A stretch of DNA of 64,000 nucleotides from Perkinsela sp. CCAP 1560/9 (GCA_965644495.1 CBFFSA010000001.1:1736001-1800000), one strand, 5' to 3'; shown: positions 144-63,750, counted from the stretch's first letter. The notes: generated from the sequence alone by a model not told the origin. Translations and numbers: made by a program.

Positions 144-1103
144 ATGCCCACCGTTTCACCTTTCTTTCTCCTCCTCACACGCCTCGTCTTTTTCCCTGCC
201 CCTTGGCTCCCCGCCCCGGACGTGTCCCCGCAGCCGCCTGCCCCGAAACGGCGCAAGTTTGGCAGCAAAGTCAGCGCGGTGACCCTCTCGGAGGTCGACA
301 TGATGCGTCGTCTGGTGCAACACCTCGACCCCACCCTTATCCCCCCCTCATGGGAGAAGCGACCCTCGGCGTGCGCGTGGAAAGGGGTCCGGTGTAATCC
401 GGAATCCCAAGTCACCCACCTGCAATGGCGACGGTTCTATTTTCAAGGCAACCTCTCCTGGGGGTACCTCCCCCCGCATACGGTGGAGGTGAGTGCGGAG
501 CGCGATGGGGCCCCGGGAGGGGTCACGGGCCCCCTGCGCTCTACCGATTTAAGGCCCCCGTTGGTGAAATTTAACGTAGCGGATCACCGCCATCAGGGGG
601 TGTTTGATTTTACCACGCTGCCGGTTACGATGGAGCTGTTGCATGTGATGTCGAACGCGCTTGAGGGTCCGGCGGATCTTACGCAGCTTCCGGCGAATTT
701 ACGCTGCCTGTACGCTCATAAGAGCCGTTTTGTGGGCCCTGTTGATTTTTCCCAGTTGCCGGGGCAAATCTGTGCGATTTACTTAAATCACAATCAGTTG
801 ACGGGGACGCTTGATTTTGAGCATCTCCCTGGGGCTCTGCGTCATGTTTTCCTTGGACATAACCAATTTGAGGGCACGTTGAACGTTACATGTGTTCAAA
901 GTTTATATACCCTTGATGTCTCGCACAACAAGCTGACGGGAGTGGTGGATTTGTCAGCCAAAGGTCTTGACCACATTGTGATTGACATGCGTGGGAACTC
1001 CATTACGACGGTGATCTATAAGAAGTACGCATCCCGGCGTCGTCATTATAGTGACAAAAACCTAACAAGGTATACACCAGAAAAATACGCTAAGTTATCT
1101 TAA
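144..1103 (+). CDS. LRR protein (divergent member of the array)
   Basis: ORF 126..1103, first ATG at 144; cap W..C.WKGV.C; repeats LxxLxLxxNxxxGxxDxxxLP; PKRRK basic motif. Confidence 0.85.
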   Translation: MPTVSPFFLLLTRLVFFPAPWLPAPDVSPQPPAPKRRKFGSKVSAVTLSEVDMMRRLVQHLDPTLIPPSWEKRPSACAWKGVRCNPESQVTHLQWRRFYFQGNLSWGYLPPHTVEVSAERDGAPGGVTGPLRSTDLRPPLVKFNVADHRHQGVFDFTTLPVTMELLHVMSNALEGPADLTQLPANLRCLYAHKSRFVGPVDFSQLPGQICAIYLNHNQLTGTLDFEHLPGALRHVFLGHNQFEGTLNVTCVQSLYTLDVSHNKLTGVVDLSAKGLDHIVIDMRGNSITTVIYKKYASRRRHYSDKNLTRYTPEKYAKLS

Positions 1104-1219
1104 TGGTAACAACGATGAATAAATCTATTTTTAAAATAACATTAGCCAGTTCGTTAAGTGCGGTGGTTACTTTCAACATAGAAGACACAGCTTCCTGGGA
1201 TGGGGGGTATTCGATGAAT

Positions 1220-1251
1220 ATTCGTCGAACAGGACGTCCTGTTCGACGAAT
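1220..1251. repeat. Perfect 32-bp palindrome
   Basis: ATTCGTCGAACAGGAC|GTCCTGTTCGACGAAT. Confidence 0.95.
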
Positions 1252-1664
1252 GGAAACGCGAAGTTCTTTTTGGCAGAAAAAAGATTTCGACGAACGGTTC
1301 TCGGGTTTTGTTGTAAGCAAGACTCAGTGACCGTTGGAAAAGGTAAGCGCCCTCGCGCGCAACAACACGGACGGTATGAACAAGTATAGAAACAGTATCT
1401 TTATGTCTTGAAGGATTAGTACCTTGCTTGCATGGTGCCCAAACCATTTTTCTATTATTTTCTTATTCTTATTCTTATTTTTAATTTTTTTCTATTTGTG
1501 TTCTCGTTTTTTTCCAGTCTGACAGGTTGAGCCCCGAGTCCCAGCAAAATATACTGTATAATACACGGAAAAGAACTACCTATGACTGTCATAGGCAGTT
1601 CTTACTATGTCATAGTATGACGTAAACAGATAGTACGACATGTATGTTACTATGTCATAGTATG

Positions 1665-1762
1665 ACATAGTATGTCCAAGTATTAGAAAGAGTATCATCC
1701 CTTGTAGTCCGATGCGCAACTAACGGAACTGACTTCCTCAAATTCTTCTGGGATGGGAAAAC
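1665..1762 (+). repeat. ~100-bp dispersed direct repeat (second copy ~5768-5866)
   Basis: Both copies share AGTATCATCCC..GTCCGATGCGCAACTA..GACTTCCT.AAATTCTTCTGGGATGG. Confidence 0.8.
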
Positions 1763-2322
1763 TATAGTTGTCCTGAATGCACTTCATGATGTTCAAGAAG
1801 CGACTCTACCAAGACTGTTCGCGGCGATTATGGTCATCCCCATATTTTACACACTGCAGCGCGACGTTTCGCTGCAACTCCAACGTTGTCGCACCGAAAT
1901 TATAGTGCTGGAGTCGTAACCAACACTTAATAGTGAGGGGCTGCGGTTGGGGATTCGGTGCGGTCTCGGTGCGTCGTACGCACTTATCTCAGTGCAAGAA
2001 CAGAAAGTGTGGAATGGGTGGGGGTGGGGGCAGGGGCGTAGAAGGCGAAGGCGAGGCTACATGAATCCGGATATTGTTGGAGAGGAAATCTTAGTGAAAT
2101 TTACGGTTATTAACAAATCTGTACGGTTAGTAACAAATCTACTAAAAGGAATATACGCGTGATTTTACCAAAGAAAGGGGTAACCCTGATACACTCATTT
2201 ATAACTACAAGTTATAACTACAAGTTATCACGAGCCTTGAACGTAAATATTTTTCTTTTTGGTGTACACCCCCTAGGCCCACCGGAAGCCTATCCCCTCC
2301 CCCCGCCCATAAGTAAATAAAA

Positions 2323-3312
2323 TTACTTAGCACACTTATTTGATTTTTTAGGCTCATAGGCAACGCCATCTATATTTTCCTTAAGCCACTCTCTGCGGCT
2401 TTCGATACCATCAACTACACCGCACCCTTTACTACATAAACACTCACCTTCATCACTTGTGGATTTCAAACTTAAATTTATAATCGAATCGAAATCATAC
2501 AGTGGCTGAGTAGCCAGCAGTCCATACTGAACTACAGAAACAATTTGAAAAGCATCTCTGACCCATGGTATATCATGATCAGTACCATGAAGAAAACGAA
2601 ACTTGTCGAAATGTGCAAAACGTGGCTCAATTCGAGAGCGAATCAGTGAAATCCTTTCATTCACACGTTTTTCATCATCGGTGAGACCACGGCCGGTTTT
2701 CTTATAGGGTGCAAGGCAGTGCGCACAACCTATGTACCCTAGATCGGCCAAGAACATTTCATCTTTGTGGTGAGTGAACAGCGGAGTACGATGCACACTA
2801 GTACTCTTATAAATTTTGGCATCATGCATGCTGCCAACAACTGGTCCGCGAAAGAAGAATGGAACTCCGGCCAGAGTTAGCCAAACTTCCACCTTGAAGC
2901 AGTGCTGCCGGTGTTTTCCCGAATAGGTGCTATCTCGGGTGGTTCCATCAGGTGTTTCTCTCGGTTTTCTTGCACGACATGGGATCGTCGTGACGTCCAG
3001 CATGCAGGTTACGTCACATAACCATGATACTCCCTGGGTAAACCGTAGCTCGGGGTTCATGAGCAGGGGTGAACGGCACAGCTGCGCCACACGAGTAAAA
3101 TCATCCCGGAGAGTCCGAATTGAAATCAACAGGGCGTCCGGTGAGAGCCACGCCCTTTGGACATCGTACAACTGTTCCCATGTGCAATTCAGAGAGCAGA
3201 TGCACAATGATGACTGAACACGACGGTAATCAGTCTCCGTAACATCGGATCCATGCACACGTCGGAGCTCGTTGTAGAACTCCCGCACCTGTGCTGCCGA
3301 GATGCCAAACAT
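2323..3312 (-). CDS. Harbinger/ISL2EU-like DDE transposase
   Basis: Motifs LDVT, YSGKHRQHCFK, GSMHD, LADLGY, N...SLIRSRIE..F; ATG at 3312. Confidence 0.85.
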   Translation of the reverse strand: MFGISAAQVREFYNELRRVHGSDVTETDYRRVQSSLCICSLNCTWEQLYDVQRAWLSPDALLISIRTLRDDFTRVAQLCRSPLLMNPELRFTQGVSWLCDVTCMLDVTTIPCRARKPRETPDGTTRDSTYSGKHRQHCFKVEVWLTLAGVPFFFRGPVVGSMHDAKIYKSTSVHRTPLFTHHKDEMFLADLGYIGCAHCLAPYKKTGRGLTDDEKRVNERISLIRSRIEPRFAHFDKFRFLHGTDHDIPWVRDAFQIVSVVQYGLLATQPLYDFDSIINLSLKSTSDEGECLCSKGCGVVDGIESRREWLKENIDGVAYEPKKSNKCAK

Positions 3313-3614
3313 AGAGAGAGAATGAAACGATTGAAAGAAATTTCGATTTAAAAGCAAAATAAGTAGGGTTGTATTATGATTGGGCGGAAATATTTTAGCA
3401 TGTACTTGTTATTAGTGGAATGAAATAACAATTAGTGGAATGAGCTAGTAATTAGGGAAAATCGAACAGAACAGTAGTGGGAACGAAATTGCCTTACCTT
3501 ACCTTGCCTTCTAACTTGCCTTATTACCTTCTTTACCATCTTATTACCGTCTTACCTTCGTAAGACCTTATTACCGTCTTACCTTCGTACTTTCTCGTCT
3601 CATGTGGAGCACAC

Positions 3615-5991: not shown

Positions 5992-6858
5992 ATGCGATCT
6001 CGCTTTATTAACAGTATGGATGTTCCGGAACGTTCCAGCGCACAGCGCACATCAGATGAAGATAATTTATCGTCAAAGCACAGTTTATCTGGTATGAAGG
6101 TGAATGCAGCGAAAGTGGGCATTACGAATTTGCCTCAAGAGTATCAACTGGCACGGATCTTAGCAGATGTCAAAGATTTGCACAAATCATGGAGTACGGA
6201 AACGCCGGCCTGCAAGTGGGCAGGCGTGAAATGTAACGAACGTGGGGAAGTCACCTATATCGCCTGGGAATTTAACTTATTTGGGCACCCCAATTTAAAA
6301 TATCTGCCACGGAGCCTCGTGCATTTGTATTTGTGGCGCAATATGTTGACAGGGTGCGTTGAGCTGGTTGATTTACCCATAGGACTGGAAGTGCTCAATC
6401 TCTCACATAACCGATTTAACGGAGAAGTTGACTTGACTTCTTTACCGCCGAACCTCCGCGGTCTGTATCTAGGATACAATATGTTTACGGGACAAGTGTG
6501 TGTTTCAAGGCTTCCGACCAGCATTAGAAACTTATACCTCCAGGAAAACACTTTTTCCGGTTATTTTGATTTAACGTCGCTTCCGACCGGCATAAAGAAC
6601 GTGGGTTTAAATCATAATCACTTTTCTGGTAAATTGCACCTCGACCACCTTCCGCCGAACATAATAACTCTTCAGCTGTCAAGTAACCTGTTTTCTGGGG
6701 ATGTTTGCTTGACGAGACTTCCAATGTCCATCGATTTGCTGGATTTATCGAATTGTCCCGATTTGAGCGGCGCTGTATCAAGATCGGCACTACCAGTGCA
6801 ATTGCGCTACTGGAGCGATATGTATACTTCAAACACGCGAATTTATGTGAGTAATTAA
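5992..6858 (+). CDS. LRR protein
   Basis: NLPQEYQLA..SW....ACKWAGVKC cap plus ~7 LRRs. Confidence 0.92.
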   Translation: MRSRFINSMDVPERSSAQRTSDEDNLSSKHSLSGMKVNAAKVGITNLPQEYQLARILADVKDLHKSWSTETPACKWAGVKCNERGEVTYIAWEFNLFGHPNLKYLPRSLVHLYLWRNMLTGCVELVDLPIGLEVLNLSHNRFNGEVDLTSLPPNLRGLYLGYNMFTGQVCVSRLPTSIRNLYLQENTFSGYFDLTSLPTGIKNVGLNHNHFSGKLHLDHLPPNIITLQLSSNLFSGDVCLTRLPMSIDLLDLSNCPDLSGAVSRSALPVQLRYWSDMYTSNTRIYVSN

Positions 6859-8785: not shown

Positions 8786-8801
8786 CTTTGCTTGTATTTT
8801 C

Positions 8802-14515: not shown

Positions 14516-14625
14516 ACTCCAAAAACATGTGCATATTAAAGGGGGGGTCACAGTACTACGTACACGTTATCGTGAAATGTTTTCGTATGTCTGAGCATTA
14601 GAGCGACACGTACAAAAAGATTTTT

Positions 14626-14814
14626 TTAGCATCTTTTAAAGTGAAGATGAATGAACAGATCATGTACTTGAATCAAATGAGTGCACCCCACTGAAACGCG
14701 GTGTATATCGCTATTCGTCGGTAGATCGCTGATTCGATGAGCCGTAAAATCATCGACTACGATAGCGGTAGGTAAACAGGAGTCATTTAAACTTCCCATG
14801 CACACTTGGTCCAA
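14626..14814 (-). pseudogene. pogo-like transposase fragment
   Basis: VVDDFTAH...GCTHLIQVHD. Confidence 0.7.
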
Positions 14815-15084
14815 TGCAGATCGTTTTTACGAAATCCGCGTGTATTCGTTTGCCTCACAAATTTCCATTTTACCATATTCTTCCCCGTATTTTCTTTCGC
14901 CCAAACTGAATCATAGTTGCAGCTCAAGATACTAAAAGGTTACGAATCAAAAGGTCATTTTTCTCTCAACTTAGTAGGTAATTAGGTAATGGAACAGTGA
15001 TAATTACCACCCATTTCCCTGCGTGTGGTAATTACCACATCCAGATTACCAGATTATCACATCCAGGGTATGTGGATACTAAGT

Positions 15085-15280
15085 ATGCTACCCCCCCTTA
15101 CCCCCATTTATTGTGCACAAAATAGAGGCTGAAGAATGTTTGTGTAGTGGGACCGATTCGGTAAATTTGATTTTACCTTTTTTGTATTCTGTTTGGAAAG
15201 TCACTTAGGCTACCAACTTCTAGCATTAACTTAATACTGTAAAATTTTTCGCAGACGTTTTAGCTATCTCTATCTGCTTT
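15085..15280 (+). repeat. Degenerate copy of the pogo 5' region (12105-12325)
   Basis: Shared GAGGCTGAAGAA..GGGACCGATT..GGAAAGTCACTTAGGCTACCAACTT. Confidence 0.75.
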
Positions 15281-16519
15281 TCTGGTCAGATTGAACCACG
15301 TTTGCACACTGTTCAAAAATTCTCCTAAAAGTAACTAAATATCAATAAAGTCGCGACAAAAACAAAGCTACGCACACAAGACTATCTCCGCACAGAACAA
15401 TGCCACATCCGCACCAGCGGGCTTTGCTCTTGAACCCGCAATGAGCCATTACACTTCTCAGTTATGGCTCGGAGATCATTTCCGTACATCCGCAACAAAA
15501 CCCACCATCGTGGTCATTTACCATGATTTAATCAGTACCTGAGAATGTAAAAGGGTCAAAAATACTAGCAAAGACTTCAAACTACGTACTGTAGTTAGAA
15601 GTACGTACTGTATTTAGAAAGACACAAAAACCAAAAACAATGAAAAAAAAACAGTATTTCTTTTTCTTGAAAAAGTGTGCAAACTTGGTTCAATTCCACC
15701 GCTTCTCTTCATCCGCGTAATGTCGCACACGAACGATGTACCAACAAACGTTCATAGAATAAAACGTCTGCTGTCGAGTTGGGCTCGGTCAGCGCCACCT
15801 TCCCTCCAGGTAGAGGAACGGGCCAAAATCCTCAGAGTATTTCTTCAGGTATATTCAGGTACAACTTTGTTGTCTTGTTATGTTGGCACTGGGTAGTCTC
15901 ATCTTCAAAAATGACGGAAAATCCTGCTCACCCTAGTTCTTTAGCGTCTTGTTATGTTGACGACGGCTGAGCGAGCTCGGGAGGCTGGGGTCGCTAAGCC
16001 CCATCATCCGACATAAGCCGGATGCCCTGACGAGCGGTTCTCGGGGCAGCTCTTGCGGGAGCGGGAGCGGATGGAACGATGCGATTGGGCACTCTTGATC
16101 CATTGGTTCCCAGTCGCGTGGCATTCCTTGTGATGACGGTAATGTTTCTGTGCGATTCTGTGTAGACTCGTAACTCGATTTCGCCTTTGATGGATAACTC
16201 CTATCTCCTTTCGCATGCTTCTGAGAGAGCTCTTTCTCAAACGTACGAATTCGGGGAGATGATTCGCCGATTACGAATTTTAGTTTGGGGCGATGTTCCG
16301 TTTTCTTGGTAGGGAAAACTCCTGATGAAGCTTTTTCGCGGGGTGAACGCAGGAGCAGGTGAAGTCGTTGAGGGATGCGGGGGAGCTATCGACGGCGAAC
16401 GAGGTGGCGGTGGCGTTCGTGGTGAGGTTGGCGGTGGCGCTGGAATTCGCAGAGCGGAGCGTGGCGGGGTGGTATTATTAACTCATCCGAAGACCTTTTT
16501 TCTCACGCCTCATTATAAT

Positions 16520-16777
16520 CCCCTGACAGCAAAAGCGGATGTCGACAAACTTAAGAAGTATGGGGGGTTGGCAAGTCAGAGAGCGAAGGCGCCCTTCCCG
16601 TTAGCATTTGCGGTTTTCGGAGTTCGCGGAAATGCGACACTCTCCTTTCTGAGGAAATTGGGGAGACGAACCCCAAGCCCAAGAGGCTTCACAGAGCACG
16701 CGCTGACGGCCATCGGGATGGCGATCCAGCGTGGCAACGATCAAATATTGATAGTGGCCACAACTACGGTCCATTAG
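16520..16777 (+). pseudogene. C-terminal REL fragment of a CRE-like retrotransposon
   Basis: KLKKY..FPLAF..FG..G..TLSFL...IGMAIQRGN. Confidence 0.6.
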
Positions 16778-16799
16778 GACCTTATTGATGAAGGGGGGT

Positions 16800-19753
16800 T
16801 GAAAACAAGGCATACGATACATGCCGAAGGCTGCAATATCCAACTGTAGACACCCCGGAAATCGCAGTGAAAAACGCAGAACTCCTGGGTGCCTCTCTGG
16901 CAGTGGCGGCATACGAAATTGCACAAGAGATTAACCCCACTAAAGGTTTCCTCACGCGATCGAAACGCAGACACGCCTGATTCAAGCACCGGCCACTTTC
17001 GTCTGAAAATGCAGCCCACGAAATGACGAAACACATACGCAACCAAAAGAAATCACTACGCTACACACACGGAACGGAACGCCAAGAGCTCCGTCGCTGC
17101 ATTAAGGAAAGTGAGAAGCTAGAGAAAACATACACAGAAGAGGCCAAAGCACATAGGAAACAGCTAGAAAGACAATGGGCCCATAGCAGATTCACGCGGA
17201 ACCCGTGGACAGCAGCATCCGAGGCCTTGGACCGCCCCTCGACCTCCGCCACCGCCGAATATCCTGAATGTGATTTACCTACGATAGAAAAATATTTCAC
17301 AGAAAGCACAGCACCTCCCGCCGAAGAGCATCGCCTGCCGCCGAACAACGTACTTGGTCCTCTACCCATCAACGAAATGGAATGGTCTCCACTGACCGCG
17401 CAAGATGTCGAAGACGCGCTCAGCAGCAAAAGAAGCGCAAGCGCGCCAGAGCGTGATACGATTACAAACGCACTTCTAAAACAATGCAAATACCTGTACC
17501 CCCGTATAGCGAACACGTTTAATGATCTTCTGCGCTACGGCGTCTGCCCGCCATGCTGGTCCTCCGCCGTAGTTAAACTCATTCACAAAGGAGGCGAAAA
17601 ACACATCCCGAAAAACTGGAGACCTATCTCCCTGACTAGCGCTCTAGGCAAACTTTTCAATAGCATGATCGGACACCAAATTTTGACGCATACCGTGTCC
17701 TCCGGCCTCCTAGATACAAGCGTTCAAAAAGGCTTTCTTCCGAAGATGAGTGGTACACTGGAACACACGCAAGCTCTCTCCGAAATACTACAATACTACC
17801 GCCGAAACAAAAGGCAATATTGTCTCACGCAGTTTGATCTCAGCAATGCATTCGGCTCGGTCCCCCATAACATCATCTTCGAGGCACTGCGATGGGCAAA
17901 CGTCTCGCCACAAATCGTGTCCTACGTTGAAAGCATGTATTCACATGCGGAAATGCGTATTAAGTGTGTCGAAGGTTTGTCACGTGCTATACCGATACAC
18001 AGAGGCGTGCTACAAGGTGATACCCTGTCACCCATAATTTTCAACTTAGTGATGGAAACTGTACTACGATACCTCAAGCAATCGTGCCCCCGGTATGGCC
18101 TTGACTACCCAGATACTCCAAGGCATTTCCTGAAAGCCTACGTTGACGACCTGACGATACTGACTAGCAGCGAAACCGACACGCAGCACGCGACCAACAC
18201 ACTCGAAACTGCACTGAGACGAATAGGACTCTCAATCAACGTAGACAAGAGCCGTACACAGTGCATGTCCATGCGTGAAGGCAGTGAGCACCCGGGTTAC
18301 ATGACCAGGAAGCCGAGACTCAGTATCGAAGGCAAAGCGATACCACATATATGTGACCGTGGAAGCACTTTTCTTGGAATGACCATAGCACCAGGAGCAC
18401 AGCAAGCGAAAGAACTTTTCAAAAAGCTGGATGTCAGACTAAGAACATGGCTTCGGAATGTCGACGAGAGTGCACACAGTCTCCCCGAAAAACTTTGGAT
18501 CTACAACAGAGCGATCGTATCCCGTCTGCGCTACGCCCTCACCGTTCACCCGTGTGTCACTTTCAACTTTGTATTGCGATTGCAGAAAAGAATTACACGT
18601 CACCTTAAGAAATGGATCAATGCAGCATCCACGACTTGCACCGAAATTCTTTATACTGAACGAGGGTGGAACCTTAAAAGTTTATCCAAGCTGTGGTCCG
18701 AATGCTCTATCCTAGCCTTAACACAGATGCACAAGTCGCGGGACCCATCGATACAGGCGGCGCTACGAGCCCGAATCAAGCAAGAAGAAGAAAAACGATC
18801 CTCTGGTTATATTCGTCCAAGCGCTGACGCCATTCAACACCTTCATGACGCGCGGAAGGCGCAACAGATAGCCCGTGATAACCATGAATTTTACGTCATA
18901 AATCAGCTTCAGAGACGGGCACCGACAGCAGCAAAATGGTGGAGCCTCCCCTCCGAGGCTGATCTCGCGAAAGAGTTCTCAGCGGCCCTGAACAACCTCA
19001 ACAGTGAAAAACTTTCTCGCTTCGCAGCTTCAGTACTAACGCTTTCACCCCTACCATCCAGAACCAATCTTTGGCTTTGGGGTCTCCGGCGTGCGAGTGT
19101 AACATGTCCCATATGTAAACTCGAATCTCAAACAACAAGGCACGTGCTCTCGGGGTGCAAAGAGTCCCTTCAGCAAGGGAGATACACCCTCCGTCATGAC
19201 ATGTTACTTGAAGAGCTCGGAAAACACTTGCTGCGTTCGCCGTATACCAAGAGCGTACACCTAGATATCCCCGGATTTAGGAATGCCCCGGCATGGCTCG
19301 GCACCCGTGAGGACCTTCTTCGCCCCGACGGTTTGATTACACTTAAGGATGGAAGTGAGTTCATCATTGAGCTCACTGTGCCCTGGGAAGAGAACCAGTC
19401 TCAGGCGCGCGAGGGCAAATCCCGTAAATATAATGCTCTCTTCCATGAACGACGCATTAATCACCCTAGGACGACCCTTGTTGTATTCGAAGTGGGAGCC
19501 CGCGGCTCGTTACTCACATCTTGTCGAAACCTCAACCTCCTCTTTGACGAGGACACAAAGCATGCGGAAAAATGTCGAGAAAGTCTAATGCAGACCGCCC
19601 TTCGAGGCAGTTTCATTATCTGGCAGAACCGCGAGTCTGCCGTTTGGACAGAAGGACGGGTATAACGTCTGTAAAAGATAGGTCTGGGCAGCGTCATATG
19701 CGCCCCCCACGCCTATCCGCATATTCTCTGCCTTATAAAGGTATGATAAATTA
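16800..19753 (+). mobile_element. Non-LTR retrotransposon (R2-group RT+REL), 5'-truncated
   Basis: Intact 880-aa ORF; upstream remnant AELLGASLAVAAYE..NPTKGFL matches the element at 37766; 3' end abuts an LRR fragment. Confidence 0.88.
17023..19665 (+). CDS. Reverse transcriptase + CCHC finger + restriction-like endonuclease
   Basis: NWRPISL, QKGF, DLSNAFGSV, GVLQGDTLSP, YVDD; CPIC..H...C, RHD, RPD, ELTVPWEEN, K..KY, EVGARG. Confidence 0.93.
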   Translation: MTKHIRNQKKSLRYTHGTERQELRRCIKESEKLEKTYTEEAKAHRKQLERQWAHSRFTRNPWTAASEALDRPSTSATAEYPECDLPTIEKYFTESTAPPAEEHRLPPNNVLGPLPINEMEWSPLTAQDVEDALSSKRSASAPERDTITNALLKQCKYLYPRIANTFNDLLRYGVCPPCWSSAVVKLIHKGGEKHIPKNWRPISLTSALGKLFNSMIGHQILTHTVSSGLLDTSVQKGFLPKMSGTLEHTQALSEILQYYRRNKRQYCLTQFDLSNAFGSVPHNIIFEALRWANVSPQIVSYVESMYSHAEMRIKCVEGLSRAIPIHRGVLQGDTLSPIIFNLVMETVLRYLKQSCPRYGLDYPDTPRHFLKAYVDDLTILTSSETDTQHATNTLETALRRIGLSINVDKSRTQCMSMREGSEHPGYMTRKPRLSIEGKAIPHICDRGSTFLGMTIAPGAQQAKELFKKLDVRLRTWLRNVDESAHSLPEKLWIYNRAIVSRLRYALTVHPCVTFNFVLRLQKRITRHLKKWINAASTTCTEILYTERGWNLKSLSKLWSECSILALTQMHKSRDPSIQAALRARIKQEEEKRSSGYIRPSADAIQHLHDARKAQQIARDNHEFYVINQLQRRAPTAAKWWSLPSEADLAKEFSAALNNLNSEKLSRFAASVLTLSPLPSRTNLWLWGLRRASVTCPICKLESQTTRHVLSGCKESLQQGRYTLRHDMLLEELGKHLLRSPYTKSVHLDIPGFRNAPAWLGTREDLLRPDGLITLKDGSEFIIELTVPWEENQSQAREGKSRKYNALFHERRINHPRTTLVVFEVGARGSLLTSCRNLNLLFDEDTKHAEKCRESLMQTALRGSFIIWQNRESAVWTEGRV

Positions 19754-20147
19754 TATCTAGGATACAATATGTTTACGGGACAAGTGTGTGTTTCAAGCAT
19801 CGATTTCAAGCATTAGAAACTTATACCTCCAAGAGAACGCTTTTTCCGGTTGTTTTGATTTAACGTCACTTCCGACCAGCATAAGGAACGTGAGTTTAGA
19901 TCATAATCACTTTTCTGGTAAATTGCACCTCGACCACCTTCCGCCGAACATAATAACTCTTCAGCTGTCAAGTAACCTGTTTTCTGGGGATGTTTGCTTG
20001 ACGAGACTTCCAATGTCCATCGATTTGCTGGATTTATCGAATTGTCCCGATTTGAGCGGCGCTGTATCAAGATCGGCACTACCAGTACAATTGCAAAACT
20101 GGAGCGATAAGTATACTTTAAACACGCAAATTTATGTGAGTAATTAA
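19754..20147 (+). pseudogene. 3' half of an LRR gene, near-identical to 6466-6858
   Basis: Nucleotide identity continues into the 3' flank; 5' half is missing at the retroelement junction. Confidence 0.9.
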
Positions 20148-20499
20148 AACAGATTTAATCCATTTACAAATAACGAAGAGATTTTTATGGAAAACAAACT
20201 TATGATATATTTTTGTTAATATTTGTTAATATGTTATAATAATACATGTATATTCGAATAACTTATTCGAAATGCACAATGTTTGTTGAAGTGCGGTCTT
20301 TGAGAATGTGTAGTACGTAGTATCTGCATAGTGCATGTTCCATATATGAACAGGATCACTGTCTCGAAAATAGTGCGGTCAACATTTCTAAAAATACATT
20401 GAATTCATCCGAAAACCTCCTCTCACGCCTCATTAATCAGCACACATTATATCCATCGTTATATCCATTTTTCTCTTTGTATCTTCTTCACACCGTACC

Positions 20500-21357
20500 A
20501 TGTCTCCGATATTTCTTCGTTTCGACGATCTGGAGCCCCCCGTGAAGCGACGCAAAGTGGTTGCAGACGACGAACGACCCGAGGTTACGCTCGCAAGCCA
20601 GAGTGTGCGAACAGCAAAGGTTACTCTCGCGAATCTCCCGCAAGAATACCAACTCGCGAAACTCATTGCGGATTTAGAAAACATTGACGACTCATGGTGT
20701 ACGGAGACCCCCGCGTGTGAGTGGTCCGACGTGGACTGTGACGAGGATGAGAAGATTTCAAATATTTCGTGGAGTGAGTACGACTTGGTCGGGAAAATAC
20801 ACCTCGAGTACCTCCCACTCTCCCTTGAGGGTTTTGCGGCACGTGCGAACGAGCTGTCCGGGACCGTACCGATGGATCAGCTTCCCCCGGATCTCGATAC
20901 CCTCATTCTGATGTATAACATTCTTGACGGCGAGTTGGACATGACCTCACTGCCGAAACATTTGGTAGGCTTGTATCTGAGCCAGAACCAGTTTACGGGA
21001 AACGTTTGTCTCACGAGGCTCCCTGTGGGTATGAAATATATTTTTCTCAACCATAACCATCTCACGGGAGCGCTGGATTTGAGTTTACTCCCACCAAAAA
21101 TGCGGACGTTGAGTTTAGCGAATAATTCGTTTTCCGGTGCGCTCGATCTTTCACAGCTTCCGTTGACGATAGGAGGTATTTGCTTGCAGGAGAATACATT
21201 CTCGGGGCATGTGGAATTGACGCGTCTGCCCTGCGGACTGAAAACTCTTATTTTGAGCAACAATACAGGTCTTCACGGAGAGGTCAAGAAATCGCAATTA
21301 CCAGATTCTGTTCGACATGGTTTGTTTACTTCTGAGACGGGAATAAATGTAACTTGA
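20500..21357 (+). CDS. LRR protein with NLS-like PPVKRRKV
   Basis: Cap plus ~7 LRRs. Confidence 0.92.
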   Translation: MSPIFLRFDDLEPPVKRRKVVADDERPEVTLASQSVRTAKVTLANLPQEYQLAKLIADLENIDDSWCTETPACEWSDVDCDEDEKISNISWSEYDLVGKIHLEYLPLSLEGFAARANELSGTVPMDQLPPDLDTLILMYNILDGELDMTSLPKHLVGLYLSQNQFTGNVCLTRLPVGMKYIFLNHNHLTGALDLSLLPPKMRTLSLANNSFSGALDLSQLPLTIGGICLQENTFSGHVELTRLPCGLKTLILSNNTGLHGEVKKSQLPDSVRHGLFTSETGINVT

Positions 21358-37734: not shown

Positions 37735-37737
37735 AAA

Positions 37738-37765
37738 ATAAAGATACAGTTTCTGTACCTTGTTG
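37738..37765 (+). repeat. Last 28 nt of the SL exon; 5' copy of the target duplication
   Basis: ATAAAGATACAGTTTCTGTACCTTGTTG is identical to 42582-42609. Confidence 0.88.
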
Positions 37766-42581: not shown

Positions 42582-42660
42582 ATAAAGATACAGTTTCTGT
42601 ACCTTGTTGGTACATTTTCCCTTTAGTTCATCTTTTCTTTCCCCGGCAACGGGCATAATC
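42582..42660 (+). ncRNA. Spliced-leader RNA gene, 3' part of exon plus intron
   Basis: Euglenozoan SL core CAGTTTCTGTAC..TTG followed by GT donor at 42610, pyrimidine tract and CCCG-GCAA-CGGG hairpin. Confidence 0.75.
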
Positions 42661-43054: not shown

Positions 43055-43163
43055 CTAAACCCCCTTGGTGCGACACCCGTCAATACGGATTGTGCCGATG
43101 ATATCGGCTGTCGCATCAAGGGCTGTATCTCTGCGCCAACGAGCGCATGAACATCAAAATTAC

Positions 43164-43303
43164 GACGAAACGAGTTTAGTGGTGAAATAAATCTCACGAA
43201 ATTACCTCCAACAATGAAGTATTTGTCGTTATCCCATAACAAATTCAGCGGCAAATTGTGTTTGGACAAACTGCCGCCAGGTCTTTGGGACCTTGCGTTG
43301 GGT
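43164..43303 (+). pseudogene. LRR gene fragment (matches 35220-35359), right part of the split copy
   Basis: Near identity to the 34577 gene. Confidence 0.88.
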
Positions 43304-43633
43304 TTTTGTTACTGTATCAGTAAGGCAAAGAAGGCCAAGCTTTATTTCACACTTTAAAAAAATATCATATTGTGTGGTCATATAGACTTTCACAATTTTT
43401 ATAGTAATTTTATAGCATCTTAAATTGAGGGGCTGCGGGTGGGGATTCTGTGCGATCTCGGTGCGGTCTATTAAATATATTTAATAGATTTATTTCTACG
43501 TAAAATAACTCGAAGACGTTTTTATCACTCGTCCCTTTATCACTTGAACCGTTCTTTGGAGAGGACTAATTTTAAGCTTGAACATATGTTTTTTTACTCT
43601 GTTCAATCTCACAGCTCCTTCATGCATACATTT

Positions 43634-44464
43634 ATGCTTACCGTAAGCTTTGAAGACGCACGCTCCCCAGATCATAAAAGGCGGAAGTTAAGTGATAAAG
43701 AAAACACAACGGTGAGTCCGAGACCGCGTAAAAGAGCCGCAAAAGTGAGCGTCGCGAATCTTCCATTGGAATACCAACTCGCACGTCTCATTCGCAATAT
43801 TGAAAATCCTCACAACACGTGGGACACGGATACGCCTGCGTGCAAGTGGGATCGGGTAATTTGTAACGAACAAGGGGAACCCGACGATATTTATTGGGAG
43901 CAAATGGAGGATTCGGACTGTCAAGATCATTGGGAGTACGGTTTAAAAGGGAGTCTCGATTTGACGGATATTCCAAAATTGGTGAAGCGTTTTTCTGTGA
44001 ACAAGAATCAATTGAGAGGCGAAGTTCGATTAGATGGTTTGCCGGATAAACTGGAAAATCTAGACTTGAGTCAAAATGAGTTTGAGGGTTCATTAGATTT
44101 GACATCGCTTCCCCAATCACTATATTTGTTCTGTTCATACAAGAACAACTTTACAGGGAATGTGTGCCTTACGAGACTTCCACCTCCCATGGAACAACTT
44201 TTGTTGGGGGATAATCGTTTGACTGGGTCCGTAGATTTGACGTCGCTTCCATCGAAAATGTGGCATATAAATTTAGAACGAAATGAATTTAGTGGTGAAA
44301 TAAATCTCGCAAAGTTACCTCCGACAATGAAGTATATGTCGATATCCCATAACAAATTCAGCGGCGAATTGCGTTTGGACAAACTGCCGTCAGGTCTTGA
44401 GCAGCTTGCGCTGGGTCACAACCAGTTTGAAGGAGAGATAGACGCTAAATTCTTGGAAAACTGA
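43634..44464 (+). CDS. LRR protein (KRRK/KEN subfamily)
   Basis: ORF 43544; ATG 43634 is equivalent to the paralog starts. Confidence 0.92.
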   Translation: MLTVSFEDARSPDHKRRKLSDKENTTVSPRPRKRAAKVSVANLPLEYQLARLIRNIENPHNTWDTDTPACKWDRVICNEQGEPDDIYWEQMEDSDCQDHWEYGLKGSLDLTDIPKLVKRFSVNKNQLRGEVRLDGLPDKLENLDLSQNEFEGSLDLTSLPQSLYLFCSYKNNFTGNVCLTRLPPPMEQLLLGDNRLTGSVDLTSLPSKMWHINLERNEFSGEINLAKLPPTMKYMSISHNKFSGELRLDKLPSGLEQLALGHNQFEGEIDAKFLEN

Positions 44465-48414: not shown

Positions 48415-49254
48415 ATGGATATGCTTACCGTAAAGTTTGAAGACGCACCCTCCCCAGATCATAAGAGGCGCAAGTTAAGTGATAAAGAAAACACAACGGT
48501 GAGTCCGAGACCGCGTAAAAGAGCCGCAAAAGTGAGCGTCGCGAATCTTCCGTTGGAATACCAACTCGCACGTCTCGTTCGCAATATTGAAAATCCTCAC
48601 TACACGTGGGGTACGGATATGCCTGCGTGCGAGTGGAATCGGGTGGAGTGTAACGAACAAGGCGAACCAGAAGCTATTCATTGGCATCAAATGGACCAGT
48701 CAGCATGTCCAAATCTTTGGGACTACGGTTTAATAGGAAGTCTAGATTTGACGGATATTCCGAAAATGGTGAAGCATTTTTCTGTGCAGCATAATCAATT
48801 GAGAGGCGAAATTCGATTAGATGGTTTGCCGGATAAACTAGAAAATCTAGAGCTGAGTCAAAATGTGTTTGAGGGTTCATTAGATTTGACATCGCTTCCC
48901 CCATCACTATATTCGTTTAGCGCATCCATGAACAAGTTCACGGGGAATGTGTGCTTTACGAGACTGCCACCTACCATGGAAGACCTCTTATTGTGGGAAA
49001 ATCGTTTCACTGGGCCCGTAGATTTGACGTCGCTTCCATTGAATATGAACGAGATGAATTTAGAACAAAATGAATTTAGTGGTGTAATAAATCTCACAAA
49101 GTTACCTCCGACAATGAAGTACTTGACTTTGTCCCACAACAAATTCAGCGGCGAATTGCGTTTGGACAAACTGCCGTCAGGCCTTGAACGGCTTGCGTTG
49201 GGCCACAACCCGTTTGATGGAGAGATAGACGCCAAATACTTGGGCGATTCGTAG
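48415..49254 (+). CDS. LRR protein (KRRK/KEN subfamily)
   Basis: Paralog of 31410/34577/43634. Confidence 0.93.
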   Translation: MDMLTVKFEDAPSPDHKRRKLSDKENTTVSPRPRKRAAKVSVANLPLEYQLARLVRNIENPHYTWGTDMPACEWNRVECNEQGEPEAIHWHQMDQSACPNLWDYGLIGSLDLTDIPKMVKHFSVQHNQLRGEIRLDGLPDKLENLELSQNVFEGSLDLTSLPPSLYSFSASMNKFTGNVCFTRLPPTMEDLLLWENRFTGPVDLTSLPLNMNEMNLEQNEFSGVINLTKLPPTMKYLTLSHNKFSGELRLDKLPSGLERLALGHNPFDGEIDAKYLGDS

Positions 49255-55381: not shown

Positions 55382-56401
55382 TTAATACTTCGTAAGTCCC
55401 CCCTTCGCCCTAATTACTGCCCTTAAACGACGGGGCATGCTGCGGACAAGAGGAAGACATGCACTCGGAGGAAGGCCTGCCCACGCTTTTTGGGCGCGTT
55501 CCCAAAGTTCCAACATTCCTACGGGAGGATCTGGATGATCCGCAGTCGACTTTTTGAGCTCGCCCCATAGGTGCTCTATGGGATTTAAATCGGGAGACTG
55601 CGGGGGCCAGTCTAGGACACACAATTCTTGTAAACGAAGGAATTCCCGGGCCTTCTTACTCGTGTGCTTTGGATCATTATCTTGTTGGAAGATGATCCGG
55701 TCCTTCATGACTTCCAACTTGTGGAGGGAAGGAGACAAATTCTGTTGAAGTATTTGAACGTACTGTTCAGCATTCATGTTGCCATGAACCAGAGCAATGG
55801 AGCCCACGCCGTGAGCCATCATACACCCCCATACCATGATGGATCCCCCACCGTACTTCACGGTGCTGTGAGTATTTCGCTCTGAAAGTGCTTCCCCAAA
55901 GCTCACCCACGCCCACCGGCTGCCATTCGACTCGAAACGGCAGATCTTACTTTCATCAGTGAAAAGCACATGGCTCCAGTCGGCGTTCGTCCAATGCTCA
56001 TACTTCTTTGCAAAGGCAAGACGTAGAGCTTTGTGACGCTTCGTAAGGTGGGGTTTCCGTAATTTCTTCTTCCCCTTCAAACCACGCTTCCGAAGGGAAA
56101 CCCGAATGGTTTGGGGCGAAACATCTGCAACCCCCTCATCTCTCAACCTTTTACTGGTCGCGACTGCATCCTTAGTTGCACCGCTGGTGATGAGGCGGCG
56201 GACGCGATTGGAGCATGTCTCTGTAAGCTTGCGAGGGCGATCTGTTTTCGGTTTGTTAACTAAGTTGGGTAGGTACTTTTTCTTAATGTTACTTACATTT
56301 CCTACGCTCAATTGTAGATCTGACGATACCTTCCGAATTGATAATCCGTTCTTTAGTTTTTCTATAACAAGCCTACGTAGATCACTGGGTGTACTGCGCA
56401 T
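55382..56401 (-). CDS. Tc1 DD34E transposase, left copy
   Basis: FTDESK, QQDNDPKH, SPDLNPIE with 34-aa D-E spacing; ATG 56401. Confidence 0.95.
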   Translation of the reverse strand: MRSTPSDLRRLVIEKLKNGLSIRKVSSDLQLSVGNVSNIKKKYLPNLVNKPKTDRPRKLTETCSNRVRRLITSGATKDAVATSKRLRDEGVADVSPQTIRVSLRKRGLKGKKKLRKPHLTKRHKALRLAFAKKYEHWTNADWSHVLFTDESKICRFESNGSRWAWVSFGEALSERNTHSTVKYGGGSIMVWGCMMAHGVGSIALVHGNMNAEQYVQILQQNLSPSLHKLEVMKDRIIFQQDNDPKHTSKKAREFLRLQELCVLDWPPQSPDLNPIEHLWGELKKSTADHPDPPVGMLELWERAQKAWAGLPPSACLPLVRSMPRRLRAVIRAKGGLTKY

Positions 56402-56458
56402 AAAAAGTATAGTAAATGGAGTAAGATTTTCTTTATTTACCTTGCGTTTCATTGCACT

Positions 56459-57478
56459 ATGCGCAGTACACCCAGTGATCTACGTAGGCTTGTTATAGAA
56501 AAACTAAAGAACGGATTATCAATTCGGAAGGTATCGTCAGATCTACAATTGAGCGTAGGAAATGTAAGTAACATTAAGAAAAAGTACCTACCCAACTTAG
56601 TTAACAAACCGAAAACAGGTCGCCCTCGCAAGCTTACAGAGACATGCTCCAATCGCGTCCGCCGCCTCATCACCAGCGGTGCAACTAAGGATGCAGTCGC
56701 GACCAGTAAAAGGTTGAGAGATGAGGGGGTTGCAGATGTTTCGCCCCAAACCATTCGGGTTTCCCTTCGGAAGCGTGGTTTGAAGGGGAAGAAGAAATTA
56801 CGGAAACCCCACCTTACGAAGCGTCACAAAGCTCTACGTCTTGCCTTTGCAAAGAAGTATGAGCATTGGACGAACGCCGACTGGAGCCATGTGCTTTTCA
56901 CTGATGAAAGTAAGATCTGCCGTTTCGAGTCGAATGGCAGCCGGTGGGCGTGGGTGAGCTTTGGGGAAGCACTTTCAGAGCGAAATACACACAGCACCGT
57001 GAAGTACGGTGGGGGATCCATCATGGTATGGGGGTGTATGATGGCTCACGGCGTGGGCTCCATTGCTCTGGTTCATGGCAACATGAATGCTGAACAGTAC
57101 GTTCAAATACTTCAACAGAATTTGTCTCCTTCCCTCCACAAGTTGGAAGTCATGAAGGACCGGATCATCTTCCAACAAGATAATGATCCAAAGCACACGA
57201 GTAAGAAGGCCCGGGAATTCCTTCGTTTACAAGAATTGTGTGTCCTAGACTGGCCCCCGCAGTCTCCCGATTTAAATCCCATAGAGCACCTATGGGGCGA
57301 GCTCAAAAAGTCGACTGCGGATCATCCAGATCCTCCCGTAGGAATGTTGGAACTTTGGGAACGCGCCCAAAAAGCGTGGGCAGGCCTTCCTCCGAGTGCA
57401 TGTCTTCCTCTTGTCCGCAGCATGCCCCGTCGTTTAAGGGCAGTAATTAGGGCGAAGGGGGGACTTACGAAGTATTAA
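56459..57478 (+). CDS. Tc1 DD34E transposase, right copy
   Basis: Same protein except GRPR instead of DRPR. Confidence 0.95.
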   Translation: MRSTPSDLRRLVIEKLKNGLSIRKVSSDLQLSVGNVSNIKKKYLPNLVNKPKTGRPRKLTETCSNRVRRLITSGATKDAVATSKRLRDEGVADVSPQTIRVSLRKRGLKGKKKLRKPHLTKRHKALRLAFAKKYEHWTNADWSHVLFTDESKICRFESNGSRWAWVSFGEALSERNTHSTVKYGGGSIMVWGCMMAHGVGSIALVHGNMNAEQYVQILQQNLSPSLHKLEVMKDRIIFQQDNDPKHTSKKAREFLRLQELCVLDWPPQSPDLNPIEHLWGELKKSTADHPDPPVGMLELWERAQKAWAGLPPSACLPLVRSMPRRLRAVIRAKGGLTKY

Positions 57479-60900: not shown

Positions 60901-61669
60901 AACCGGTTGACCTCTCGGGGAACTAACCCCCCACGTCGACGGTGACCTCATTGTCTTTGAAGTTAAAAGAAACTGCTGTTCAAAGTTTGAACACAAGTTC
61001 CTTCAACACTTTCATGACGAACTCTTCTTTACTCGATACTATCATGACAGGTGTGAGAGAAGCTGTGAGAGACACCTCGACCTGGTCAAAGCTCAAAGTC
61101 CAAGGTCCTTGTAACGGCAAGGCAAGCTGGAACTTTAACCTTCGTTTAAAGATTCCTAAGCCCACAGCACAGGGGAGCCCCACAGCCAAAGGACTGGGAA
61201 GTGAAGTGAGCGGGTAACACATTTCGGGTTGTTATGCTTTATTATAAAGAGGGCTGTTATGCTTTATTACAAGAGGGTTTGGAGGGACGTGTGGGGGACA
61301 GAGAGCCGTTCCCTCGACTTTATGCTTTAGCAGGATTAGGGGTCGAGGGAACCGGAGGGGGTGGAGGGAGGGAGACCGGCTGCCAGGGGAGGGGGGATGG
61401 GAGGGTAGGGATGAGATTGACGCTTGGGTCGGGTGTGGGAGGGAATCTGTGTTGGGGTTGGAGCCCGGCGTTTCGCTTTGGCGATCGATCGGGTTCCTGG
61501 CGGAGATTCGGGGCCGCAAGTCGTTGAGATCTTATGATTCTACAAAACTTTACAATGTGGTAGAAGTAGCAACCACCAAGGTAAGGAAGTTCAGTATATC
61601 ACGATTGTGTAGTAGTAAAACCAGGGTATAGTGCAGGGTATGTGGTAACTCTTAGCTTATCGTAGTTAA

Positions 61670-62120
61670 AATATTTTGGTCAAAAGGGCATATTTTTGTA
61701 CCAAAATTTGGTTTTATTGAAATTTCTCCCCGACGAGTGGAAAACAGTTCTTAAACTTACAAAAATATATTACCGTTCCTCAGTAATATTGTACAGAAAT
61801 ATTACAAATGCTTGTATTTCGGGATTGCAATCACCTTTCACATTCGCATGGCGCTGAAGAGTTTTTAGAAATTCTAGGAAGGAATGTTCATCCCGTAAGT
61901 CAATGGTAGGATTTTACTCAAATATATCACACCCTTCGCAGTAGAGGCTCATATTGTTGCGCGAAATAGAATTTTAAAGGTGATGCTAACTTTCTTTTAA
62001 TAACGGTTCCTTTGTAATGGAGGATTCCAATAAAATATTTAAATTTATTCAAATGTTACAAAAATCGTTTTCAGTCAGTCGGAAGAGTCGGTACAAAAAT
62101 ATGCCCTTTTCACCAATATT
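61670..62120. mobile_element. MITE flanked by TTAA (Kolobok/piggyBac-type target)
   Basis: ~31-bp TIR AATATT(TT)GGT.AAAAGGGCATATTTTTGTACC; TTAA on both sides. Confidence 0.7.
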
Positions 62121-62185
62121 TTAAATGGTTTCGTGCACTCTAATTACTCTAAATAAAAACAATTGCTGCAATTTAAGCTCGCATA

Positions 62186-63100
62186 ATGCTTTCATTTTCT
62201 GAGGCTATGGATCTTCCGGAGCGTAGCATCATCACAGCGAAACGCCCCAGTAAAATACGGGGAACGCAGCTACCCCAGGAATACGAACTTGCGCAGTTCA
62301 CGGCGGACATTATCTATCCCGATCCCTCCTGGAACACCTCCCTCTCGGCGTGCGAGTGGGGTGGGGTGAGTTGTTCGAAAGACCAAAAAGTTGTCGCCAT
62401 CGATTGGGTGCGGTACCGTCTTACCGGGTCCCTACGCTGGGAGTTTCTGTGCCCCACGCTGCTCCATCTGTCCATGATGGATAACGCGCTGAGCGGAGCG
62501 GTAGCCCTGGAGCAACTCCCGGGGGCGCTCACTATGTTGGATATCCGACATAACGAGTTTTCCGGTGTCCTCGATTTGGCCCATCTCCCGGAAATGTCGA
62601 AACAGTTTGCGTTAAGTGGGAATCGGTTGCATGGGGCTGTGGTGCTCACCGAGCTCCCGAGCTTGTTATTTGAATTAATGCTGCATGACAACGAGTTAGA
62701 GGGGAATGTTGATTTAACTAACCTCCCCGGGACGCTGTCTTATCTGTTTCTTCGTCGTAATCGATTCACCGGGGTCGTGGATCTCACGCATCTTGCACAA
62801 AAGCTATTTTATCTGGACCTTTCGAAAAACGAATTTTACGGATCACTTTGTTTGCAGCATTTACCTTCGTCGATGGAAGTTTTAGATTGTGCGAATAACG
62901 ATTTCAGTGGCACAGTCTTTTTTCATGACCTCCCCGAGGGCTTGCGTTTTCTTGTGCTAAGCCGTAATGCTGAACTTTGTGGTGAAATCGATCCGGATTT
63001 GCTGCCCGAGGGGTTGAAGAACATCAGTTTGCAGGATGAGCGCGCGGGAAGGAAGCTTCTCGGCGTGGATGGCACACGGATAACCGTAAAAAGCAATTGA
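62186..63100 (+). CDS. LRR protein
   Basis: LPQEYELA..SW...ACEWGGVSC plus ~8 LRRs. Confidence 0.93.
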   Translation: MLSFSEAMDLPERSIITAKRPSKIRGTQLPQEYELAQFTADIIYPDPSWNTSLSACEWGGVSCSKDQKVVAIDWVRYRLTGSLRWEFLCPTLLHLSMMDNALSGAVALEQLPGALTMLDIRHNEFSGVLDLAHLPEMSKQFALSGNRLHGAVVLTELPSLLFELMLHDNELEGNVDLTNLPGTLSYLFLRRNRFTGVVDLTHLAQKLFYLDLSKNEFYGSLCLQHLPSSMEVLDCANNDFSGTVFFHDLPEGLRFLVLSRNAELCGEIDPDLLPEGLKNISLQDERAGRKLLGVDGTRITVKSN

Positions 63101-63409
63101 GGAAATATTTGTAGAGGTTAACATGAAGGCATCAGGGGATTTGACCTTTATAGGCACATTGCACCTTTACACTGTATTGCGGTGGGTGTTTTCCACCTCT
63201 TTCTTCCTTATGGACTCTTTCCTAATGTACTCGGGGTCGGGTGAAACTACAAAAGCGTCAAAATTCGCCTCATTGTGTTGCGGGCACACCTACACTGCAT
63301 GTTGTAATACGTTGTACATTCCTTGTGAGTTTTCCGTTCAGGTGATTTGTCACGAAAATAACCAGGATAGAATTAACCAATCGAAACAATATTTTTCACA
63401 AGCATTATA

Positions 63410-63750
63410 GCGAACTTACCCCAGGAATACGAAATTTACCACAGATATTGAAAATTCTGATTCCTCTTGGAACACATACGTACCTGCGTGTGACTGAACA
63501 GGTGTGCGTTGTGCAACAAATCTCGAAGTTGTCGGGATCGAGTGGACCGATGTGGGACTCAAAGGCTCCCTCCAGTGGAGGTATTTATGGGCCACATTTC
63601 GTCAAATTCGAGCAGAAAAAAATCACTTTACCAGGGGGGTACCTTTTTGAGATGCTTCCTTCCCACCTAGCCTTCTTGGTGGTACCATACAATCAATTCA
63701 CACGTGGCTTAGACACATCTGCGTTACCCGCTGGACTTACCCGCTGGACT
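63410..63750 (+). pseudogene. Degraded LRR gene
   Basis: NLPQEYE, SWNT..PAC remnant, YNQFTRGLDTSALP. Confidence 0.65.

Follow-up and report, generated by a model that had tools for sequence, protein, structure and literature searches.

A very large family of capped leucine-rich repeat genes in a relative of Perkinsela, with a conserved scaffold and a fast-changing predicted concave face

The window analysed here, a stretch of 64,000 nucleotides (nt) from Perkinsela sp. CCAP 1560/9 (GCA_965644495.1, contig CBFFSA010000001.1, here C1, positions 1736001-1800000 of a 21-Mb, 110-contig assembly), carries a long run of genes for small leucine-rich repeat (LRR) proteins. Coordinates without a contig name are window positions. 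The best explanation, to which we assign a probability of about 0.75, is that the window is one stretch of a very large, lineage-specific family of capped LRR genes, which turns over by duplication, gene conversion and decay, and in which the protein scaffold is selected while the concave face evolves at a roughly neutral rate.

Content of the window and size of the family

A family profile (hidden Markov model, HMM) was built from 13 long LRR open reading frames (ORFs) and searched against the six-frame translation of the window. It finds 17 members, all on the plus strand and none on the minus strand, comprising 12 intact capped genes, one frameshifted gene (H) and four fragments (Table 1). 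The original prediction of about 17 LRR genes and fragments in a single orientation is borne out, as is its picture of a protist LRR family that is clustered and diversifies rapidly. All 66 family hits in the surrounding 300 kb (C1:1.67-1.70 and 1.736-1.97 Mb) have this orientation too.

The family is a very large, lineage-specific multigene family with hundreds of copies. HSP90 genes, intronless and nearly identical, form tandem arrays with a period of 2587 bp in the same assembly (six copies at C1:2503265-2517720 and five at C16:751-12619). Genome-wide, a strict DNA pattern for the cap has 470 hits, against 0 in the reversed control, and there are 1386 first-look candidates with 172 scored matches to the family, counts that would be inflated by the haplotigs or large duplications suggested by the C16 HSP90 array and by C2/C13 pairs of identical score. 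The family is not confined to transposon-rich arrays, since the ENA contigs ctg4004l (L038) and ctg4012l (L039) each hold a single member among housekeeping genes of the same strand, the neighbours being an ArsA/GET3-like ATPase, EnY2 and the ribosomal proteins L2 and S3.

HSP90 also serves to place the organism. Its protein shares 99% of residues with the EukProt entry MMETSP0151_2, 80% with the HSP90 of Perkinsela sp. CCAP 1560/4 and about 76% with that of Trypanosoma. MMETSP0151 is a sample that we take to be a Paramoeba atlantica culture, although a literature search on the accession gave no confirmation. Judged from these comparisons, the organism is a kinetoplastid with Perkinsela as its nearest named relative. 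In the ESM Atlas the nearest clusters carry the labels Euglenozoa and Discosea, as would fit a holobiont of amoeba and kinetoplastid.

Protein architecture and predicted fold

The members are intronless genes for soluble proteins of about 250-300 amino acids (aa), each with a plant-type N-terminal cap, five to eight repeats (8-9 in gene M) and a short C-terminal cap strand. The N-terminal cap consists of an LPxEYxLAxF helix and the motif CxWxGVxC, whose residues C45, W47 and C52 vary little or not at all among 53 sequences; in nearly all members a basic stretch and then LPxEYxLAxF precede the cap cysteines. Among 297 repeat units the pattern is a very regular 23-residue LxxLxLxxNxFxGxVDLxxLPxx, rather than the 24-residue LxxLxxLxLxxNxLxGxIPxxLxx of plants, and N9, G13, L20 and P21 are kept at 90-98%. 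In a Pfam scan of 10 proteins only LRRNT_2, LRR_1, LRR_4 and LRR_8 are found. The LRRNT_2 match (PF08263) is borderline, at 17.9-21.5 bits in nine of the ten against a cut-off of 20.7 bits, and BspA-type LRR_5 (TpLRR) is absent from the same ten.

An AlphaFold2 (AF2) model of protein D, made with an alignment of 53 sequences, is a capped solenoid with a mean predicted local distance difference test score (pLDDT) of 91.4, in which repeat positions 3-5 form the inner strands and positions 10-14 another short strand. The closest solved structures in a Foldseek search with this model are the ectodomains of OsSERK2, PRK6 and SRF6 (E 1e-7 to 1e-6, template-modelling score 0.6-0.78). Likewise, the family profile matches plant LRR receptor ectodomains, caps included, with values up to 1e-51.

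Among named proteins, the profile detects two from Perkinsela sp. CCAP 1560/4, XU18_2094 (E 1e-54, 262 aa) and XU18_3404 (E 2e-34, 200 aa). By sequence they are to be counted as family members; their lengths are similar, and their identity is only about 32-36%. The next named matches after these are plant receptor-like proteins. The Perkinsela genome paper (PMC5601477) does not mention leucine-rich or LRR proteins, and full-text literature searches found no paper that links Perkinsela with LRRs or describes the family.

A hydrophobic start resembling a signal peptide is present in three of 37 full-length members by a hydropathy heuristic, which is not a dedicated predictor. These are gene A, C1:1847151-1847963 and C1:1948898-1949674, and in each the hydrophobic start precedes a KRRK motif, so that a minority of the family may enter the secretory pathway. 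A hydropathy scan of the same 37 members reveals no C-terminal hydrophobic segment, and the Pfam scan of 10 proteins yields no NB-ARC, TIR, kinase or transmembrane domain. The suggestion that the array is an immune-like repertoire therefore finds no support in these proteins.

Selection on the scaffold and on the concave face

Residues were assigned to repeat positions with a unit profile, and ten young pairs of genes from 264 kb were compared, with positions 2, 3, 5, 7 and 8 taken as concave in the register of the AF2 model. Nonsynonymous (dN) and synonymous (dS) divergences were obtained by the Nei-Gojobori method. Their ratio, omega, was estimated by maximum likelihood (ML) with a simple codon model of our own (not PAML or HyPhy) in which the site classes are fixed, each pair has a single distance and only LRR codons are used. 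A distance shared by LRR and non-LRR codons was rejected for the pair D/E, in which the homogenised 5' part inflates omega, and the fit was repeated on LRR codons.

The three site classes are clearly graded, with the fastest protein change on the concave side, the predicted binding surface. The scaffold (core) positions have a dN of 0.035 and an omega of 0.13, the other, convex x positions 0.119 and 0.49, and the concave positions 0.206 and 0.89, the last not different from 1 (P 0.42). With the pooled LRR dS of 0.32, the Nei-Gojobori estimate of concave omega is 0.52-0.65. Outside the LRRs omega is about 0.4 in the young pairs. Purifying selection on the fold is thus firmly established, and evolution of the concave face is approximately neutral on average. 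The concave hypervariability that had been read from the sequence is real as a concentration of replacements, concave positions exceeding convex x positions with a likelihood-ratio test (LRT) statistic of 14.75 (P 1e-4) over the ten pairs. By single position, dN is highest at 2, 3 and 7, while 5 and 8 are no faster than the convex positions 10 and 19. At the depth of the whole family the entropy of the concave positions is 3.5-3.95 bits, against 3.5-3.7 bits for the convex positions 10, 14, 19, 22 and 23. Five ENA contigs added no young pair, as they either come from the same genome (100% identical genes) or hold single members among housekeeping genes.

The only pair to exceed 1 is D/E, which was chosen by eye, with a concave omega of 3.07 (LRT P 0.005). 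Here 15 of 25 concave codons are replaced, where 8.2 are expected at omega = 1 and the fitted distance (P 0.004). At 1.5 times that distance P becomes 0.08, at the null-fit distance 0.15, and Nei-Gojobori counts in a Fisher test also yield 0.08. All site classes of this pair are some two- to threefold above the family norm. Positive selection after the D/E duplication is therefore suggested, but not robustly. In the clade of genes I, J, K and L (the KRRK subfamily) concave dN is 3-5 times core dN and concave omega is 1.06-1.21 over the three topologies of the four-taxon tree (P >= 0.4), and in the six pairs from the adjacent 200 kb, outside the window, concave omega is 0.44 and below 1 (P 1e-4). 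The original prediction was of diversifying selection, with a dN/dS of 1 or below at the β-strand x positions named beforehand as the opposing result. What is found is 3.07 in D/E, 0.89 in the pooled pairs and 0.44 outside the window, so that diversifying selection is not established.

The D/E duplication and mosaic copies

Genes D and E lie in a tandem duplication of 1386 bp, its copies at 21633-22608 and 23019-24002 being 89.8% identical. As had been claimed, the DNA upstream of the two genes is identical: the first ~290 nt (21633-21920), consisting of 175 nt of upstream DNA and about 113 nt of coding sequence (CDS), agree at 100%. Beyond this point the divergence is 13-15%, with 3-9 mismatches per 30 nt. 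The claim of near-identical termini holds for the protein but not for the DNA at the C-terminal end, where the tail has diverged by about 10% (dS 0.41, omega 0.22). The differences do fall mostly on the xxLxLxx positions; of the 15 replaced concave codons, eight differ by at least two nucleotides. However, dS is 0.06 before the repeats against about 0.25 within them, and the contrast between similar ends and a different middle is therefore in part a product of mosaic history. The simplest account of these sequences is that D and E would have been duplicated longer ago and that gene conversion has since, and recently, made their 5' parts alike.

A copy of D with 98% identity is found on contig C2, in a dispersed duplicate of 1.9 kb that lacks E. 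It differs from D by nine changes in the CDS, which are evenly spread and so argue against ongoing hypermutation; a reading of D/E in terms of hypermutation, such as that of a diversity-generating retroelement, is accordingly not supported. No sequence in the genome is closer than D to the repeat region of E, which shows that E was not pieced together from paralogues that still exist. Contigs of run X2 leave the 5' half of E uncovered, and since the C2 copy is also without E, copy content differs between haplotypes or isolates.

A similar patchiness is seen in the KRRK clade. I and J are 97-100% identical over the 5' 250 nt, while in the middle J and K are closest, and dS between I and J is 0.04 in the 5' part against about 0.3 elsewhere. 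Of the informative sites, 27 support the grouping of I with J and 18 of 45 support the other two groupings, the conflicting sites being without significant spatial clustering (P 0.16). The pattern described for D/E had been extended to this subfamily; it does hold for the excess of concave over core replacements, but the upstream DNA is not identical, with only ~35-110 nt of diverged homology. As this homology extends beyond the CDS, retroposition was rejected as the origin of the copies.

An alternative haplotype and decaying copies

Window positions 14,594-23,739 have an alternative haplotype in the ENA contig ctg2398l (L035), with flanks 98.8% identical; genes on a second contig of that ENA assembly are 100% identical to those of C1. 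L035 has a different retroelement, 5 kb long, and a B-like LRR gene at full length; it lacks D and carries an E-like copy. The B-like gene (L035:8110-8970) occupies the site at which the window has a retroelement (17023-19665) and, directly downstream, the truncated fragment 1, whose protein agrees at 99% with the 3' half of the L035 gene. Hence fragment 1 is what is left of a gene whose truncation is associated with a retroelement. The E-like copy (E') has lost the invariant cap tryptophan, a ladder asparagine and four residues, and looks like a gene in decay.

Gene C and its allele C' differ at 14 codons, of which 12 are within codons 249-276. The proportion of nonsynonymous differences (pN) is 0.063 at concave sites, against a synonymous proportion (pS) of about 0.035 in the LRRs. 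A donor for the C' patch was not found in the assembly.

Strand blocks, trans-splicing and transcripts

On C1 the cap motif falls into large strand blocks: plus to 0.29 Mb, minus at 0.42-0.61 Mb, plus at 0.84-2.6 Mb, minus at 2.69-2.83 Mb and then plus again. These blocks reach ~1.8 Mb, and the HSP90 array on C1 is in the same plus block as the LRR genes of the window. The single orientation of the array is therefore explained by the chromosome-scale, same-strand blocks of kinetoplastids and is not a property of the array. Polycistronic transcription and trans-splicing have been reported for Perkinsela (PMC5601477). A sequence resembling a spliced leader, of the form ...ATACAGTTTCTGTACCTTGTTG followed by GT, is present at both flanks of the second retroelement (37740-37765 and 42585-42609); it ends in ACCTTGTTG before the GT, and the same 9 nt begin the transcript L002 of gene C. 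The acceptor inferred for this transcript (20463) has no AG in the genome, so that trans-splicing of the family genes is at most likely.

Transcript contigs of an MMETSP sample cover the whole of gene C and encode the C' version. Contigs of run X4 match fragment 1, C and D, the match to D being without any mismatch, and none of them falls on intergenic DNA or on E. Such contigs do not give expression levels. Taken with the selection results, the family consists of intact, transcribed, fold-constrained small LRR proteins.

Weighing the explanations

In the preferred explanation, tandem and dispersed duplication makes the family grow and turn over, gene conversion homogenises copies in patches, and others are lost through frameshifts and through retroelements inserting in the repeats. 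Selection retains the scaffold, while change at the concave positions, chiefly 2, 3 and 7, is close to neutral, and positive selection may have acted in bursts after certain duplications such as D/E. The one-way orientation follows from the location inside a kinetoplastid same-strand transcription block. The proteins would then be a diversified set of binding modules with partners that vary between copies. As the organism apparently lives inside an amoeba, such partners would most likely be at the host-symbiont interface or within the symbiont. Bacteria associated with amoebae have expanded LRR and other repeat families that are thought to act on the host (PMC4209131), and by analogy a role at the host interface is plausible; given how few members have signal peptides, an internal role is equally open.

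Several points weigh against this explanation. About five of the 17 local copies are defective, and a concave omega near 1 is equally compatible with a simple lack of constraint. The selection results come only from the ten young pairs of 264 kb. Run X4 belongs to a 2015 study, and that its contigs are from RNA is a guess. Most members are without a signal peptide, so export to the host is unsupported. The two conserved cysteines of the cap are usual in LRR proteins outside the cell and fit a cytosolic protein poorly.

A true repertoire under diversifying selection, with concave faces driven apart to recognise ligands, as in immune-like or host-recognition receptors, we consider somewhat unlikely. 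It would account for the D/E result (omega 3.07, 15 of 25 codons against a neutral expectation of 8.2), for the excess of concave over convex replacement, for the C/C' alleles, where concave pN exceeds LRR pS, and for a concave omega of 1.73 (P 0.007) when the window pairs are pooled. But these window pairs are not independent, D/E was chosen by eye and its P climbs to 0.08-0.15 under other treatments of dS, and the KRRK clade is not significant. Moreover, the pooled omega of 0.89 and the value of 0.44 outside the window point the other way, the convex x positions are nearly as variable at family depth, and the proteins have no features of signalling, anchoring or secretion in the Pfam and hydropathy scans. 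An immune-like receptor system is unsupported in the absence of an attached signalling domain. A more elaborate form, which we regard as distinctly improbable, would make the family the recognition arm of the host-symbiont interface: a germline repertoire of hundreds of capped binders shaped by episodic positive selection and segmental conversion, perhaps with orphan fragments as donors, and reaching proteins of the amoeba by a non-classical route in which the basic motif before the cap might have a part. Trypanosomes offer an analogy for the donors, as they use VSG pseudogenes in this way.

At the other extreme, the expansion might be largely neutral and driven by transposons, its copies multiplying and decaying within a compartment rich in repeats, with a minority of functional copies and a face that is variable only for lack of constraint. 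Of the 17 local members, five are incomplete or carry a frameshift, Harbinger, Tc1 and LINE elements surround the LRR genes, a retroelement stands where the other haplotype has an intact gene, E' has lost an invariant tryptophan and an asparagine, and concave omega is about 1. This is nevertheless unlikely, because the core omega of 0.13 and the non-LRR value of ~0.4 in young pairs record purifying selection on the fold. Most reading frames are also intact, transcripts exist, single members are found among housekeeping genes, and the family has been kept in Perkinsela sp. CCAP 1560/4 despite the reduction of that genome to ~9.5 Mb (PMC5601477). Lastly, the bearer being a kinetoplastid, one may think of a programmed mosaic system like that of the trypanosome variant surface glycoproteins (VSG) or the lamprey variable lymphocyte receptors (VLR), in which expressed copies would receive segments by gene conversion from orphan LRR fragments as donor cassettes. 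Orphan 3' fragments do lie beside full genes (fragments 1, 2 and 3), and identity is patchy between paralogues and between alleles. Yet a search of the genome found no donor for either the C' patch or the LRR region of E, the conflicting sites of the KRRK clade are not significantly clustered, at least one fragment is explained by retroelement insertion, and nothing points to a dedicated expression site, all of which makes such a system very improbable.

Comparison with known LRR families

The closest counterparts are the small plant LRRNT_2 ectodomains (SERK1/2, PRK6, SRF6, PGIP), which have in common with the family the CxWxGVxC cap, the LxxLxLxxNxLxG core and a second short strand after the asparagine ladder. 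The proteins described here differ in their 23-residue repeat (24 in plants) with a fixed LP at positions 20-21, in mostly having no signal peptide, transmembrane segment or kinase, and in being encoded by hundreds of copies in a kinetoplastid. Plant R-gene and receptor-like protein clusters and lamprey VLRs likewise form tandem clusters of birth and death, with exchange between paralogues and replacements at xxLxLxx. In contrast to these, omega above 1 is not robust in the present family, NB-ARC, TIR and kinase domains and a GPI stalk are lacking, and nothing points to somatic assembly. The best sequence match of the family profile is Yersinia YopM, which has LPX repeats of the YopM/IpaH type (1.5e-55, in six stretches), owing to the recurring pattern LP...L..L.L..N. 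YopM differs in its repeats of 20-22 residues, its different cap and its nature as a secreted bacterial effector, and the likeness appears to be at the level of the repeat only.

Massive lineage-specific expansions of repeat proteins are also found in other cell-associated organisms, such as the BspA-like proteins of Trichomonas and Entamoeba and the LRR families of microsporidia. From these the present family is distinguished by its plant-type cap, by the lack of a BspA-type Pfam match and by a bearer that is a eukaryotic endosymbiont. The LRR and F-box families of amoeba-symbiotic Chlamydiae are similarly expanded (PMC4209131); in the 10 proteins scanned with Pfam here, no F-box or other effector domain is fused to the LRRs.

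Hundreds of small LRR genes with a selected fold make up a sizeable share of the genome, although the published Perkinsela genome is strongly reduced. Retention of the family suggests that it is important for life inside the amoeba, or for handling very active transposons. Among eukaryotic endosymbionts that are not photosynthetic, Perkinsela-like organisms are to our knowledge the only well-known ones, and the family offers concrete candidates for the molecular interface of the amoeba symbiosis. It is also a natural data set on how an LRR repertoire diversifies without an attached receptor domain.

Other features of the window

The positions of all family members and mobile elements are collected in Table 1. 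Gene H is likely to be a pseudogene. Rfam and tRNA scans of the window returned no match.

Table 1. LRR family members and mobile elements of the window (KRRK, subfamily or motif; RT, reverse transcriptase)
Feature	Position	Strand	Remarks
LRR gene A	144-1103	+	signal-peptide-like N-terminus, KRRK, cap, ~6 LRRs; family HMM 2-270; LRRNT_2 and LRR_1
Harbinger-type DDE gene	2323-3357	minus	between LRR genes
LRR gene B	5992-6858	+	intact; cap and 7 LRRs; Pfam and family HMM
Retrotransposon ORF	17023-19665	+	RT (RVT_1 1e-32), C-terminal zinc finger and endonuclease-like part
LRR fragment 1	19754-20141	+	3' half of B-like gene; HMM 172-280; 5' half missing beside retroelement
LRR gene C	20500-21357	+	intact; transcribed; MMETSP transcript L002 aligned across whole gene
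LRR gene D	21808-22563	+	copy 1 of 1386-bp tandem duplication; transcribed
LRR gene E	23194-23952	+	copy 2 of 1386-bp tandem duplication; intact in window
LRR fragment 2	25045-25270	+	orphan 3' end; 90% identity to D 22350-22574
LRR gene F	26415-27248	+	intact; Pfam and family HMM
LRR gene G	27845-28624	+	intact; D/E subfamily (53-55% aa)
LRR gene H	29046-29830	+	frameshift near 29177-29204, between cap and LRRs; two HMM pieces in different frames
LRR gene I	31410-32255	+	KRRK subfamily; full-length
LRR gene J	34577-35428	+	KRRK subfamily; full-length
Second retrotransposon	37760-42478	+	N-terminal ORFs, RT (RVT_1, zf-RVT), endonuclease-like end; LRR fragment downstream
LRR fragment 3	43136-43354	+	43157-43303 97% identical to J 35213-35359
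LRR gene K	43634-44464	+	KRRK subfamily; full-length
LRR gene L	48415-49254	+	KRRK subfamily; full-length
Tc1-type transposase pair	55382-57478	head to head	both intact; 356 and 339 aa, nearly identical; few bases apart
LRR gene M	62186-63100	+	intact; 8-9 LRRs
LRR fragment 4	63429-63650	+	cap-proximal piece; HMM 50-123

Two stretches between the genes recur elsewhere in the genome. Between genes I and J, positions 33640-34010 match at 84% a tandem array with a period of ~1.69 kb at C2:618507-637482, and further copies are scattered elsewhere. Just 3' of gene D, a stretch of 45 nt (22596-22640), for which an Rfam scan gave no match, recurs dozens of times at 89% identity, including in tandem arrays with periods of ~2.0 kb (C2:992-16738) and ~5.4 kb (C9:161104-177462).

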